Assembly (NCBI GenBank): GCA_030704615.1
Contig: CM060733.1
Span: forward strand, 13,268,001-13,332,000
Length of the DNA: 64,000 bases
Reading direction: 5' to 3'
From: Takakia lepidozioides
Taxonomy: Eukaryota; Plantae; Bryophyta
Part shown: in pieces, positions 53,401 through 62,400 of the stretch
Layout of the letters: each line of letters begins with the position of its first letter
How positions within the stretch are numbered: position 1 is the first letter of the stretch
Made by a program: the position numbers and the translations under genes
Notes under the pieces: generated by a model
What the model was told of the DNA's origin: nothing
Database searches by the model: none
Seen by the model: only the letters and a program-made list of their open reading frames with translations

Positions 53401-56400
53401 CTGAACCGACAGGCTGAACCAACATACCACCAAGAGATGCCTTCTCGGTGATATATGTGTGTGTGACAATTAGGTCTGAATGTAATGAAGTATTCACTTC
53501 ATTCTATGTTCCTGTGTCCTGGTCTGAGAGAGGTCTTAGCAAAGAGAGTCTGAGCTCAGAGAGGAGAGGAACCTTGAAGGTTCAGCTTCATACAGGGTCC
53601 ATTAAGTGTTGCTTACTATTGCAGGTGGCTTGCAGTCCATAGCATAGATTGTACTCATAAGACGTTGTTTGCAGTCCATAGCATAGAGTAAGAACAAAGG
53701 GGATCAGGGTTTGAAGCCTAGAACAAGTTCTGTTTGTTTGCAGGGTCAATTAGGCTTTGTTTCCAAGCTAGCGGTTTTCAGACCCTACAGTAGACAGTCC
53801 TCTTCTCAAAGGTCTAGGGACCAGTCAGACAAGATGAGTGCGTGTCTACATTTTGGTGCGAAATCAGCTGTTTTCGTGGTTTGAGAATGCGACTTATTTT
53901 GGGTGATCCATCATTATATAATAATACATAAAAAGTCATATAAAACAGATAGTGAAGCCACTAGTTCTACTTCTCAACAAACAAGAGAGAGGAAACAAAA
54001 CCAGAGCCAAAAACAGCCCAAAAGCAACTACTGCTCAAGGGATTGTCTAAGGGTCAAGGCCTCGTGCAGGTAAGCTGCCAAGCATTTCTGATCCTCGTAG
54101 AGATGGGCCTAGGCTTTGCTATCAGCTGGATGTCGAACCATTTATAACGTCCGCGGAAAGCTCAAAGAGCTCATGGGACAAAATGGAAAATAAAACATGA
54201 GAGAGGAAACAAAACCAGAGCCAAATAAAACAACTACTGCTCGAGGGATTGTCTAAGGGTGAAGGCCTCGTGCAGGTAGGCTGCCAAGCATTTCTGATCC
54301 TCATAGTGGAAGACTTCAGTGAGAGATTGAGTTCCGCGGAATAGACAGTGGAATCTTCCACGCATCTCATAATATAGAAGTTTATACAGTCAATTTCATT
54401 AGAACAGAAGGGCCGAATCATGAAACAGAATAGAGAAAGCACCAGTGCAACTTGAAGCAAATATGCATGTGATGTGGGAGATTTGATTGTTCAAGAGGGA
54501 GTCCAGCAAGTGCATCTGCCACTCAAGTCCACCTTCAGTAGTAAGATTACAGAACAGTGAACTCCTAGTCCATGTCAATGACACACTAAATCTATTTCAA
54601 ACCTAGTTCAGGTTCCCTCTTCTCCTGGCTTCAACAATCTTGGCATGAGTCTAGCAGCAAGTTGGTGCTGACTATTCCAGCTTTTGTTGAACTTGGCTTT
54701 GTAGTCAGTTATGCACTGATGGGAAGAGCTATTCCATCACAGTCTTTCACACAGTGGACAGCTGCTGTCTAAATAAGACAATAACGGTCATTATTTTGCT
54801 TAGAATACGAACTCGCTCAAATTCAAGAATATCATAGAAAATCTGTATTCACCTTGATCTAGAATGGAATGGATACATGGCAGGTGACGATTTTGAATTT
54901 CATGATAACAACAGAGGGCCTGATGGACCAGCTGCTGGGTATAGCTGTAGCCAAGGAAAGGCCAGACCTAGAAGCACAAAAGAACCAGCTTATTCTCCAG
55001 GGAGCCCAAAACAAGCAGATGCTAAAGGAGATTGAGGACAAGACATTGGAAGTTCTCTCTCAAGAAGGAAATATTCTTGATGATGAGACAGGGATCCAGG
55101 TAAAATGGTTTTCCTCTTACAATGCCAACTTCAAAATCAGTTGCGCATATAAAGCATCCAGCCAGGTTTATTTAGTGGAGTGCATAGAGTTATATAGTGT
55201 TCACACCCCTTGAGAAAATGCATAACGACTCCCAACAAGTTGAGAACCATGAAATGAACGTGAGATGCTAGCAATCGGCCACCTCCACAAGATTATAAAA
55301 TCTTCTAATGCCTTCACCCTTAGACAATCACTAGAATATTAGTTCTTATTCTTGGGTTCTGGTTTCGTTCCTCTCTCGTGTTTTCTTCCATTTTGTCCCA
55401 TAAGCTCTATGAGCTTTCCGCGGACGTTATAAAGCACCATTTCATTTCTCTCAATACATGGGTACATGCCCATGGTCTTGTTCTGTGAGCCTATGCAGGA
55501 TCAACTCTTCTAGATAAGAGTATGGAGTACTCATTTTACATCATTTCCAGCTAGCACTGTATTTTGCGAATCCAAACAACGGATGTGATTACATTCAGAT
55601 CTGGAATTGAATGTGGGGGTTCAGGTCCTGTCACAATCCAAGATACTAGGAGAGGATATCCAAGAAAAGCAGAAAGTGGCTGAGGTAACAGAGGGCATCA
55701 TCGACACAACCCGCAATTCATATGTACCAGTGGCCAAGCTTGCTTCCATCCTCTATTTCTGTGTTTCTGGTACCCTCTCTCTGGACCCATGGGGCCTCCT
55801 ATAGGCGCAATGCACTTTTTCTTCTTTTTCTTCTGCATCGTCTTACACCTAGTACATCTGGGATTTTAGTCATGTTTGTTTGGAAATTCCATTGTCCTCC
55901 TGAATACATAGTATTTTCTTTTTGGTATTGTACTATGTGGCATGGGCCTGTAGGGCACCTGGTGGACGTCAAGTTCCTTCTCTATAAATTCACTGGCTGC
56001 CCAACAAGCCCAACAAACTTTATCTTCAACTATCTTGTGTCTATCTTTCCAGTTCTTCAGGAATTATTGGTTTAGGCTCCTGTGTTTTCGAAATCTTATG
56101 TATAACTTGCTATTTCCTATTCACAAACTCTATCACAACCTTGGCACGCCAAAAAACCCGACTTTGGCAGGGCCAGTGGCCACAAAAGCACGTCAAGTGC
56201 AGAGTAACCAGGGGAAAATGATTGAGCTAACCTCTCTCAAAAGAAATGAAATGAAATGAAATGGTGCTTTACAAAGTTCTGTTATAACTCAAAAGAAAGA
56301 AAACCGAACATTAAGTGGAAGTGTGTACCTGGAAACTTTCTATGTTACAAAAGTCAAACAACAACTTCTCGTGCTTATGTACAAGATATGTCCTTACCTT

Positions 56401-59400
56401 AGCACATACGGGAGAGAGATCTATAGTTATGAGTCAAGTATTCAGAAACGACTGAGGTTTGCATTGATGTGATTTTGACTTCCAGATATGTGCAACATAG
56501 AGCCTATGTACCAATATTCACTCCCCTGGTTTATTGACCTCTTTATCGTCTCCATCCTGAATAGTGAGAAGTCTCCCGACCTACCCACTCGCCTCAACAA
56601 CCTGAATGCCCATTTTCTGTACAACTTATACTGTAACATTTGTCGCTCACTCTTTGAGAAAGACAAGATGCTGTTTTCTTTTCTGATGGCGGTGAAAGTG
56701 CAGTCAGGCGCAGGGCTGTTGGACCTGGAGGAGGTATTACATGTAGCGGCCTCCTGTTTTGCCAATTCTTAAGCAATCTTTTTGTTATGCAGCTTTATTT
56801 CAATTAACAAGTGGTGGCAAGCAGGAAACAACAAAACCGAGAGAATGAGTTCTTTTTTGTTGTAGCTTGGGCCTGGAGAGAGGGAAAAAGAATGGGACGA
56901 TGTTGCCCGGCCCTGTGGCCATAGACCCCGCACCCAGTTTGGGGGGAACAAGAGGGGCTCACTCCCGTAGTTACCTGGGTATAAACAATTGGTTCGGGCT
57001 TTCCAGATTTCCTCTAGAAAGCACACAAGCGTGAGAAGGGAGAAGAGAAATGAATGAAAATGAAATGGTGCTTTATAACGTCCGCGGAAAGCTCATAGAG
57101 AAATGAAATGAAATGGTGCTTTATAACGAAAGATTGTACTCATAAGACGTTGTTTGCCGTAGCCTTGTGGCCATTGACCCCCGCCCCAGTTTGAGCGGGA
57201 ACAAAAGGGACAGAACCTACCTCTGTCAGGGGCTGACGTTGGTAGTAAGACTTACCTCCATATAAAGAAATAATCCGGGTTTTCCAGATATCCTCTAGAA
57301 ATCCCTTCACACAAGCATCAATCTTCTGTGTGTGATTTGCCCAAAAACTAGGCCTCAGGAGGGCCTGGGCTTTTGGCTCAGCCTCGAGACTTTCAAAGTT
57401 GGTAAACAGGGGTACAGGCACAATTCCCTTAATAGATTTGAAGAGAGCGTCTCTTTGGTGAGAGAACCCCGGACAGTGTATCAGAAAATGAATACTGTCT
57501 TCAGATTGCCCACACAACGGGCAATTTGCACTCTCCCTTTCCTCTCTGCTTCTGTTTGCTGTTCAAAGGTAGGCTTCCTGCCCTGAGTTTAAATTTCAGT
57601 CTAGTGCCGAGAGTGGGTAGACCCTTGAGGTCATCCAAGATGTCGTCCCCCATGTCACAGACTGGAAACAAGTTCAGGGAAGTTTCCTGCCTAACTTCAT
57701 TTTCATCAGACAATCTCATGGCAACAGACATGGCTGAGGACACTACAGCCTCTAAGTCAGATTTATCTAGCAGGGTCAAGACTTGCGGATCCAGGTCCAG
57801 GTCCTTGAGGATCTCTTCTACTCTCTTCTGCCAGGACTTAGCCTGTTTGACAGGGCGGTCCTGTTTCCAAGATATAGAGTCGATTAACTTAGGATATCTG
57901 GTGTTGGGCATATGTTGCAGCTGACCCCACCATCTGACCTTGAATTCATCTCGTCGGGAGCTTAAGGACGGAATGCCAAACTCACCCCGAACAGCCACAT
58001 TGGCTGTTTTGGAGCATGCTGACATACACTCCTTAAGCACCCCCACTTGAATGGATTCTAGAGACTTTATAACGAGAGAGAGAGAGAGATTGTACTCATA
58101 AGACGTTGTTTGCCGTAGCCTTGTGGCCATTGACAAGAGAGAGAGAGAGAGAGAGCATCAACTCACAGGAGATGGACACGGGCGACAGGGTTGATCATTA
58201 TTCTTTCATCTTTGTCATCGAGGCTCAGCCATTTGCATTGAAAAACCGCAAACATCCACCGAACCTTATCCTGTGGATCACTGGAGAACCCATGTTCCCT
58301 GTCAATGCTCATACTATTCAGAATTGTAGCATTTAAAATTGGAGCTTTTCCTGTTTTGGGCAGGAAATACATTATTGCATAGGAGAAACTATCCCTTTGC
58401 ACATCCTCCTGCAACATGATGAATATGATGTTGGAGGTGTCAAGGCTATAGCCCTTGCACGACACTCTGAGAACAGAACGGGATGGGTAGCTCAGTGGTA
58501 GAGTACCCCACCGGAATGGGGGAGGTCCTAGGTTCAACCTAGCCCGACCACACGCCAGTGGTATAAGAGCCAAGGTTGGGGTGGTGGTCAGAATGGGTGG
58601 GCATTAGCATAAGGGCTATGCCTTGAGGGGGAGTGTTGGAGGTGTCAAGGCTATAGCCCTTGCACAACACTCTGAGAACAGAACGGGACGGGTAGCTCAG
58701 TGGTAGAGCACCCCACCGGAATGGGGGAGGTCCTAGGTTCAATCCCTAGCCCGACCACACGCCAGTGGTTTTCCAACATATGAGGCAAATGAAGATGAAA
58801 CTATACTTCGAAATCTACTTCACTAACACTTTAAAGATCAACATGTAGTTGTAGCTATATATCCATGAAAGCACTGCTTGAAGTTCATGACATGACCTGG
58901 GTGAATGATTACAGCTTAGGTTTCTGATGACGGGCGGTATAGTTCTTGAGAAAGAACCAGAGAAACCCAACATTCCATGGCTAACTGAGAAAATGTGGGG
59001 TGAATTCTATCGTATCTCCAAGGTACCCTTTGCTCTATAAGCTCTTTGAGCTTCCCATGGGCGTTATAAAGATTATTCATTCTTCCTCTGTTGTTCTCTG
59101 TTGCTTTTGGGCTGCTTCTGGCTTCGCTCTTTGTCTTTTACTCTTTCTTGTTTCCTGCTTTCCTTTCTGTCCGATAAACTCTTTGAGCTTTCTTTGGACG
59201 TTATATTGTTCCTTTTCATCTCATTTGATTTCTGTCCCATTCAATACTTTCTTTTGGTCCATAGTCCCTTTGGTTGATATTTTTTTGGACTATGTATTGT
59301 ACCAACCTGTTCCGGGAATTAAAATACTCTAAGGTGATCTACTATACTCGATTATCATATCTCAGCAGACATTGTATTAGAAATATACCTGTACTAACAA

Positions 59401-62400
59401 TAATTGTGTGTCTGCAGAACCTAGATCTTTTTCTTGTTGTCCTGTCATTCGCCAATGCAAATGAGAGAAATTTAGACGGAATCCTACATCTACGGCATGG
59501 CATTTCATGCTATCTTGATTTTCAGGGATGTATAATTCCGTACTAATGCAAATCAATTTGGATGGGGTTGGGGTAACAGATGGAGAGCTTCAAAGATCTA
59601 TATCTGGGTATTGAAGAGAATGCAAAGGGTTGGCAAGTACTGTTTGATAGCCCTCAGCCTCAAGTATGTACTGCTCCTATCCTCCCTGCCTTTGAGTGTT
59701 AAGGGTAAGCAGGCACCAACCAAGTCTCTGTCTACTGACTGGTCTTTGTTGTCCCTTCAATTTGTTGCAGTGGCCCTCTGGCCCCTGGTGGATAAATTTG
59801 CTTACAGTGTACTCAACACATTTTGTCCTCTTCTTCTACTGTCTCCCATAGGCCCTCTGGTCCACTGGTACTTTACGGTTTAGGGTTTAGTTAAATTTCT
59901 TTTCTGGCTTTACCATTTCCCCCCTCCAATTTTATATGCTTGATACTTGCACCATGAGAGCATTGAGGTTATTGTATGATCATGCCACTGTGGTAATGAA
60001 CTTAATACCACTAGATGCAAAAGCTGAGGAAATTGTCGCGGACACATCACAGGAACTTGCACATGTGTCTCTGAGTGGGGAGAGCAACCACCAGTAACCT
60101 CAGTTAAAAGCCACAGCTTTTCATGCCTCCACTCTCCACTAGATCAACAATCCATGTACGAGACAAGCTAGAATTAAGTCAATCGCACATATGGAACCTA
60201 TGGTGGTGAAAGAGCTGTGGCCAGTTCATCTACAACATCTGTGTATCACACTGATTACATTCTCTCCCTAAATTTTGCATCCACAGTTACTTACAGGTGG
60301 GAGACATATATCTAGTGGGTGACATCTGCTAATTACTGCATAAGTTACGAAACTCTATAGGGACTTCTTACATCTCACACTCAGGAATATTGTCCACCGT
60401 GCAGCAGGGTTCTGCTATCCAACTGGAGAAAGCTGCACAACTTTCTGTGCTGCAATTTCACACAGCCAGTGGTTGTCAATGGCAGGCCGCCACTGCCATG
60501 CAGGATCTCCTCTCTTTCCAGTTGCAAGCTAATGGAAGCAACCCCCATGAAAATGGCAGCCTCCAATGGCAACTGCTCCTGCCATATGGCTGATTTTTAG
60601 CAAGCACCCCTTGATTAGAACAGAACCTTTGACCTGCCCTGTGGACTGGATCTAGTATCTAGATCCCTGTATAAAGTAGGGTCCAGTATTGAAAGACTTA
60701 TACTGACCAGATTGATGGCAAGAGGCCAGTATGGTATACCTAGGCAAGAGTAAGCACTGTGAATGACTGTTGGGCAAGGCATTTGCTGTGTAGATGTAAC
60801 CCTGAGAGAATGAAATCATGATGGTACTACCTGGCCTTAGTATGCAAGACTTGACTGAGTCCTGACAGTCACAGATGCACTCTTTTGGGGAATCAATTGC
60901 AGAGAAATGAAATGAAATGAAATGGTGCTTTATAACGCCTGTGGTGCTTTAATTGCAGAGAGAAACTTTTCCAATGCCATGGAATCTTGATTTGAACACA
61001 TTCAAGAAGACGGTTCTGTTGCGCTGCATACGACCTGACAAGGCAGAGCCACATTTCTCAATGTTGCATTTTCTGTGAAGTAGCACTGGAACTTTATCCC
61101 AAGTATCTAGATCTTAACTCTAGTATCAAAAAGGAAACATGTGGGTGCAACGGTTGCTGGACCTTTATAAAATAAGAAATCTTATGTAGAGTTCCTCTGA
61201 AGTCGGTGATTTTTTAACAATAGGTTTTTAGTCTGAATCTTCCTTTCGATAGCATACAAGCCTTGACCAACAAGGCATGTGGCGCAGAAGGAAATTACTG
61301 TTGACATTCTGGGGAGGGGCAGGTGGTGTTGGCAGTGTCAGATTACGTGTCTGAGACACTGGGGACCAAGTTTATGGAACCACTGCCCCTAAACCTGGAG
61401 GTATGCTACAAGGACTCCTCGAGCACAGTACCACTTGTATTTATCCTCTCCCCAGGTTCAGACCCCATGTCATCCCTCCTAAAGCTTGCCGGCGATAATG
61501 GTGCAAAACTGCAAACAGTTTCACTTGGTCAAGGCCAAGGGCCAGTGGCCACAGCAATCCTGAAAGCTGCTGCTGGTGACGGGTCTTGGGTAGCTCTCCA
61601 GAACTGCCACCTGGCAGTCTCATGGATGCCCACATTTGAGAAATACTGGGAGCAAGAACTGACCAGCAAAGAGAAAGTGCATGATACTTTCAGGCTATGG
61701 CTAACCAGCTACCCATCTGAGTTTTTCCCAGTTGCCGTACTGCAAAATGCCGTCAAGATGACGAATGAGCCCCCCAATGGATTGAAGGCGAATATGACAG
61801 GGAGTTATCTCATGTATCCTATATCGGATCCTGAATTCTTTGGTGGTTGCTCCAAGGGGGCTGTATGGCGGCGTATGCTGTACTCCCTTTGTTTCTTCCA
61901 TGCCTATGTACAGGTGTTGACATTACCTCTGCATATTATATGTTTAGCTAATCACATACGAGCTTAGGCATCAGTTCCAACTTCTCAGTTTTTTTTAGAG
62001 TCTGCAATGTGGAGAGCACTGTGGAGAAGCAGCTGGACTCAGCTGAATCTGAAAAACTTTTGAGCATGGAAGAATCCTCTGGGTTTGATCAACAAGAGAA
62101 TGTTTTCATGAAATAAGCTTAATGGGACCATTCAGGCCCATTTTGTGGCTAATCTTCACTTTCCATCTAAATTGCACTTGCTTTCTTCTATTTTTTGAGC
62201 CGTGTTTGTGGGTCTTCTCAATTTCTTTCTTCCCAATGAAATGGACAATTGCGTCTAGTTGCTGTATTTCCCTTATCCTATCTAAACAAGCAGGATCTCT
62301 AAATACACCCATTGAGCCATACCTATGGGCATTGATCATCTGGGTATTTTTGTGCACCATTCTTTGCTACGTATGTCTCTTATGTTTATATAGGTTAACC

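Follow-up and report, generated by a model that had tools for sequence, protein, structure and literature searches.

How a 350-bp stretch without coding capacity came to combine the ends of an LTR retrotransposon with a pair of tRNA-like sequences is the question raised by positions 58429–58778 of the 64-kb stretch of Takakia lepidozioides DNA analysed here (hereafter the window). The initial annotation of this locus had proposed a non-autonomous LTR retrotransposon of the terminal-repeat miniature (TRIM) type, with a tRNA-derived module in its LTRs, and had suggested, subject to a search, that an element of this form was undescribed. The first part of this proposal is supported by the anatomy of the element, by its multi-copy status and by homology to a published family. 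The form itself, however, was already defined by Kojima in 2024 (Biology 13:119, PMC10886601), who gave the name Helenus to TRIMs whose LTRs contain a sequence of tRNA origin and included a plant member with a 5-bp target-site duplication (TSD). In our reading, 58429–58778 very probably belongs to a TRIM family of the Helenus type (TRIMp3) that is non-coding, present in many copies and presumably mobilised by the proteins of an autonomous LTR retrotransposon, and what is new here is the host and the family, not the kind of element.

Anatomy of the element and its surroundings

The limits of the element were read directly in the sequence. The same five bases, TATGA, stand on its left (58424–58428) and on its right (58779–58783), and its inverted termini are TGTTGGA at 58429–58435 and the reverse complement, TCCAACA, at 58772–58778, in agreement with the TSD, length and termini that had been noted before. 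Sequence reading, repeat search and MAFFT place a 5′ LTR of 131 bp, starting with TGTTGGA, at 58429–58559 and a complete 3′ LTR of 145 bp, TGTTGGA...TCCAACA, at 58634–58778 (all features of the element are given on the + strand). In the MAFFT alignment of the direct repeats, 58429–58562 and 58634–58769, there are 3 substitutions and a single indel of 2 bases (approximately 96% identity); BLAST gave 96.3% identity across 136 columns, and the repeat search gave 97% for 58429–58537/58634–58742 and 100% for 58538–58562/58745–58769. The LTR divergence of this copy is 3 substitutions per 131 bp. Two repeats of about 135–145 bp had been expected, and both are indeed present, but they are unequal, as the 5′ repeat is without its last 13 bases. 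Motifs of the LTR occur at two sites only in the 64-kb window, which are the two LTRs, against a chance expectation of approximately zero.

Adjoining the 5′ LTR is the primer-binding site (PBS) TGGTATAAGAGCC at 58560–58572, which agrees at 12 of 13 bases with TGGTATCAGAGCC, the complement of the 3′ end of the initiator-Met tRNA (iMet), and corresponds to the iMet-type PBS with one mismatch of the initial annotation. The PBS opens an internal region of 74 bp (58560–58633; previously estimated at about 70 bp), which is non-coding, with stops in all frames, G-rich and devoid of T4 runs, and which closes with the polypurine tract (PPT) GAGGGGGAG at 58625–58633, immediately 5′ of the 3′ LTR. Short LTRs with TG...CA ends in an element of less than approximately 1 kb, a PBS beside the 5′ LTR, a PPT beside the 3′ LTR and a TSD of fixed length (5 bp in plants; checked here on one copy) are the features by which TRIMs are recognised, and all of them are found at this locus. 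A search for called ORFs on other copies, by means of a 68-aa open stretch spanning LTR and interior, returned none, and a scan for bacterial-type promoters and terminators, irrelevant to an element of this kind, gave nothing.

Each LTR contains a sequence recognised by the Rfam tRNA model RF00005, for which the gathering score is 29. The look-alike of the 3′ LTR (58686–58757) scored 56.6 bits and that of the 5′ LTR (58481–58550) scored 48.2 bits, so that the Infernal check suggested with the initial annotation was positive for both. The 3′ look-alike has box A (TAGCTCAGTGG) at 58693–58703 and box B (GGTTCAATCCC) at 58736–58746, its minimum-energy fold is a cloverleaf, and it is the only one of the two that ARAGORN calls, as tRNA-???, with the anticodon undetermined. 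Its anticodon loop, CCGGAAU, is aberrant (C33), and pairs 3-70 and 31-39 are mismatched. In the 5′ look-alike two bases of the T loop/box B have been lost (GGTTCAA--CC at 58531–58539) and the minimum-energy fold is not a cloverleaf. The claim of a tRNA cloverleaf with A and B boxes in each LTR thus stands as regards the tRNA-derived sequence and the aberrant anticodon loop, but has to be qualified for the 5′ LTR, both in its box B and in its fold. Thermodynamic z-scores of the look-alikes were not significant (−0.5), and the case for a cloverleaf is therefore one of covariance-model score and not of energy.

Upstream of the look-alike, the repeat search identified an imperfect 24-nt palindrome in each LTR (58642–58665 in the 3′ LTR and 58437–58460 in the 5′ LTR). 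It reads GTGTCAAGGCTATAGCCCTTGCAC, with a CTATAG core approximately 30–35 nt upstream of the tRNA look-alike, and is not kept in the Selaginella element Helenus-1_SMo. TATA-like elements are frequent at such an upstream position in plant tRNA genes. A further observation concerns the look-alike itself: run X5 contains a 72-nt unitig, of depth 238, which covers exactly 58686–58757, and run X7 contains a unitig of 67 nt. These short unitigs could result from branches in the graph at either limit of a module common to other repeats, or could represent a processed small RNA.

The copy in the window is damaged. Its 3′ LTR ends in ...CCAGTGGTTTTCCAACA, whereas the 5′ LTR reads ...CCAGTGGTATAAGAGCC: the 5′ repeat halts at ...CCAG(TGGT), the PBS follows directly, and the last 13 bases (TGGTTTTCCAACA, including TCCAACA) are missing. 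In two independent runs, contigs of this organism contain the joint 58778→58559, which reads TCCAACA|TGGTAT, the canonical LTR-end|PBS junction. Since this junction is present in the family, it is the copy at 58429–58778 that carries a deletion. The missing 13 bp are situated between two TGGT repeats, and a deletion between these repeats has taken away the end of the 5′ LTR. Having lost this end as well as the two bases of box B, the copy is probably unable to act as a source copy.

Exons of an axonemal-type dynein heavy chain gene, detected with Pfam, are found on the + strand on both sides of the element, at 54869–55213 (AAA_9) and 61323–61967 (region D6), which places the element in an intron and in the orientation of the gene. 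The dynein exon has 93% and 84% amino acid identity to orthologous loci of relatives, the nearest named match being that of Ginkgo (61%). An empty site was sought in the orthologous dynein loci of two relatives, where the introns were unalignable and the element was present in neither, a result that is uninformative either way. The only nearby stretch that aligns to the orthologous locus of a relative is 58912–59025 (72.7%, L002 7586–7699), one frame of which resembles a short dynein exon with a GT donor near 59000; if this is an exon, the element would lie approximately 0.14 kb upstream of it.

To the left of the element, (GA)n microsatellites at 58074–58091 and 58128–58157 surround a short unique stretch, and 57140–58136 is occupied, on the minus strand, by a degraded piece of a non-LTR retrotransposon (LINE). 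The two ORFs of this piece (211 and 125 aa) had no Pfam match at E≤0.01, and the 125-aa ORF has a C-terminal motif of the HxxxC...C type. The part of the LINE piece at 58000–58067 occurs in extreme abundance in organism A and is found in organism B as well. The very high contig depths at 58074–58163 (up to 1.3 million) are due to the microsatellites and the abundant LINE piece, and this region was rejected as a part of the element.

A multi-copy family and competing explanations

In order to assess copy status, public contigs of the same organism were placed on positions 58000–59200 of the window at a likeness of at least 80%. In run X1 the unique flanks (58164–58409 and 58820–59024) lie on single contigs with a summed depth of approximately 40–43, and every bin of 58410–58778 has a summed depth of between 2,300 and 66,500, with steps at the ends of the element. 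The internal part alone has a summed depth of approximately 8,300, about 200 times that of the flanks, a contig depth which is not a copy number and which we take only as meaning "many copies". Both insertion junctions are bridged by contigs (records 1 and 8), the LTR is seen with 11–20 differences in further records, and one loose contig end continues after 58778 into a different flank. Among the placed copies, all variants reaching at least 10% of depth fall within LTR positions 1–52 (the U3 part) or in the interior; 58686–58778 contains no variant at this level, and none is listed at the PBS (58560–58572).

The jump in depth at the ends of the element and the recurrent LTR-end|PBS junction indicate that the family is multi-copy, and the depth steps, the variant LTR contigs and the different flank are those of an interspersed family, as expected for a TRIM. 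Single-copy status, which the initial annotation had named as evidence against its reading, was not seen. The element had no match in the single run from a second organism (X10), whose contigs cannot prove absence, and neither a family-specific 24-mer nor a gapped pattern joining the tRNA part of the LTR to the LTR-end|PBS junction found anything in JGI metagenome contigs. The 64-kb window contains no second copy or solo LTR elsewhere. Part of the stretch itself is present in a plant metagenome run.

These data, together with the anatomy, bear on other ways in which such a locus could arise. Because both repeats contain a tRNA-like head with A and B boxes, the locus might also be read as two copies of a tRNA-derived SINE, joined head to tail or duplicated locally in tandem, and moved by LINE machinery. 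We consider this very improbable, as the A-rich or simple-repeat tail of a SINE is absent, the duplication is of exactly 5 bp, the termini are inverted and of the TG...CA type, there is an iMet-type PBS after the first repeat and a PPT immediately before the second, other copies show the joint between repeat end and PBS as well, and homology to a published LTR element extends module by module. We give equally little credence to the idea that the locus is what internal deletion has left of one particular autonomous LTR retrotransposon which had a tRNA-like module in its own LTRs, with no independent miniature family behind it. Some TRIMs do originate from autonomous elements that have lost their interior (PMC10886601, Figure 1 legend), but the internal 74 bp are found on contigs at about 200 times the summed depth of the flank, which indicates that the short form itself was amplified, and the Selaginella relative is likewise miniature (325 bp).

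A pair of genuine tRNA genes, duplicated within a local direct repeat, is less probable still, although both look-alikes score above the Rfam tRNA gathering threshold. The aberrant anticodon loop (C33), the anticodon that ARAGORN could not determine and the mismatches at pairs 3-70 and 31-39 all speak against functional genes, the repeats extend beyond the cloverleaf, by 52 nt on the upstream and 21 nt on the downstream side, and end in inverted termini with a TSD, and in the Helenus elements described by Kojima (2024) most of the tRNA-like parts are likewise non-functional (PMC10886601). A multi-copy TRIM of the Helenus type is the reading that we retain.

Proposed life cycle

In elements of this class the minus strand is primed by a tRNA at the PBS and the plus strand at the PPT, and integrase acts on the TG...CA ends, giving rise to a 5-bp TSD. 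Since the Helenus-type element described here codes for nothing, it should depend on an autonomous element, and the mobilisation in trans that had been presumed in the initial annotation fits its anatomy. An autonomous LTR retrotransposon would supply the proteins that package an RNA spanning R-U5-PBS-internal-PPT-U3-R, the initiator-Met tRNA would prime reverse transcription at TGGTATAAGAGCC, second-strand synthesis would begin at GAGGGGGAG, and the integrase of the partner would insert the resulting DNA via its TG...CA ends, producing the 5-bp duplication.

The tRNA-derived module, whose boxes A and B are intact in the 3′ LTR, would most likely serve as an internal Pol III promoter, and we infer from boxes A and B only that the element may be transcribed by Pol III. 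If so, U3 would correspond to LTR positions 1–52, with R extending from the first base of the look-alike to approximately the T4 run at 58768–58771. This run, the sole one in the element and situated 6 nt before the LTR end, is a candidate weak Pol III terminator which could define the end of R, and in an intact 5′ LTR it would require read-through. The same run also argues against the Pol III step, as in intact copies part of any Pol III transcription would end at the T4 of the 5′ LTR, before the PBS. All parts of the element are contained in runs X5 and X7, which we guess to be of RNA, from contigs that cannot tell RNA from DNA. The use of Pol III by Helenus was unvalidated in Kojima (2024) too (PMC10886601).

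As to the autonomous partner, nothing else in the 64-kb window was found to share the PBS or the termini, and no LTR-retrotransposon protein domains were found among its longer ORFs. On the contig of a relative, beside the orthologous dynein exon (L001 12109–17677), there are Copia-type fragments (rve, gag_pre-integrs) as well as chromodomain Gypsy-type fragments (Chromo, Integrase_H2C2, RT_RNaseH); these Copia- and Gypsy-type lineages are possible partner candidates for TRIMs in this plant group.

Relationship to Helenus-1_SMo and to other known systems

The hosts from which Helenus has been described are fungi, animals and one plant, Selaginella moellendorffii, and Helenus has been grouped with Cassandra and Ajax as TRIMp3; its plant and fungal members make 5-bp TSDs, and the founding event was proposed to be the insertion of a SINE2 into the LTR of a TRIM (PMC10886601). 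The consensus of the plant member, Helenus-1_SMo, consists of an LTR of 120 bp and an interior of 85 bp, with a total of 325 bp (PMC10886601 supplement). In the later literature that was searched Helenus is cited only, with no further plant member.

We compared the element with Helenus-1_SMo by eye and with short-motif searches. Both are miniature LTR elements with a 5-bp TSD, LTRs that start with TGTT and the same last ten LTR bases, TTTTCCAACA, which include the T4 run. Their tRNA look-alikes, 72 nt long in both, have the same D arm (GGTAGCTCAGTGGTAGAGCACC), a near-identical T arm and, within a degenerate anticodon arm, the string CACCGG. In both, an iMet-type PBS with one mismatch is followed by a similar GGTTGG block, and the PPT ends in GGGGGAG, the internal part of Helenus-1_SMo ending in AGGGGGGAG. 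In the window, the 22-nt D-arm block of Helenus-1_SMo hit one LTR exactly, the other with a single mismatch and nothing else, and its 22-nt T-arm block also matched these two alone (2/22 mismatches). Judged by eye, the PBS and the next 8 nt agree at 17 of 21 bases, the 4 mismatches being just above the limit of the motif search, and the PPT agrees at 9 of 11. A relation in sequence to the described family is thus found in the D and T arms by motif search and in the LTR end, PBS and PPT by eye, and the element has the tRNA-derived LTR sequence with boxes A and B that characterises Helenus, albeit with the 2-base deletion in the 5′ box B.

The two elements differ in the length of the LTR (120 bp in Helenus-1_SMo and 145 bp here) and of the interior (85 bp and 74 bp), in the position of the PBS mismatch (TGGTATAAGAGC here and TGGTATCGGAGC in Helenus-1_SMo) and in host, Selaginella as opposed to Takakia lepidozioides. 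By eye, no alignment could be made of the LTR portion that precedes the look-alike or of most of the interior, and identity from the look-alike to the LTR end is roughly 73–75% (by eye), which argues for a separate family. On sequence grounds, the element is of the same lineage as Helenus-1_SMo but belongs to a different family. The class, for which Selaginella moellendorffii was the only plant host known, thereby gains a second one, and the second plant family could be used to search for the autonomous partner and to test Pol III drive. The tRNA look-alikes of this family will also inflate tRNA gene predictions in the genome, as those of Helenus do in rust fungi (PMC10886601), and the value of the finding lies mainly in annotation.

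The comparison also touches on the age of the lineage. Between this element and Helenus-1_SMo (two sequences, compared by eye), four stem pairs are changed on both sides and yet remain paired: 5-68 (G-C here, A-U in Helenus-1_SMo), 29-41 (C-G and U-A), 30-40 (C-G and G-U) and 51-63 (A-U and G-C). Two of these are in the anticodon stem and one is in the acceptor stem, both of which lie outside boxes A and B, and pair-preserving changes in such positions hint that the fold itself is maintained. It is conceivable, although we hold it to be rather doubtful, that plant Helenus is old and widespread in spore-bearing land plants and that its cloverleaf has been kept by selection at the RNA level, beyond the promoter boxes in the DNA. 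Independent descent from different tRNAs could mimic pair-preserving changes. Were selection on the fold to be real, a 5′ end shaped like a tRNA would seem to matter to the template RNA, perhaps for its stability, its export or its packaging.

With Helenus and TRIMp3 in general, the element shares a tRNA-derived LTR sequence in which boxes A and B are conserved and the tRNA is usually non-functional, as well as a PBS and a PPT; Helenus is also found as tandem arrays and as solo LTRs (PMC10886601). Animal Helenus differ in their 4-bp TSDs (5 bp here) and seem to depend on Gypsy elements, and most fungal Helenus are primed from the anticodon loop of a tRNA and not, as proposed here, from the 3′ end of the iMet tRNA. 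Cassandra is, like this element, a non-autonomous plant TRIM with a small-RNA gene module of the Pol III type in each LTR, a 5-bp TSD and an iMet-type PBS, and Pol III transcripts of Cassandra have been reported (as cited in PMC10886601, section 4.1). Its module, however, derives from 5S (type 1 promoter) and not from a tRNA (type 2), it is larger (565–860 bp) and its sequence is unrelated. SINE2 elements have the same tRNA-derived head with boxes A and B, are short and lack coding capacity, but they are without LTRs, PBS and PPT, use the machinery of LINEs and generate TSDs of variable length.
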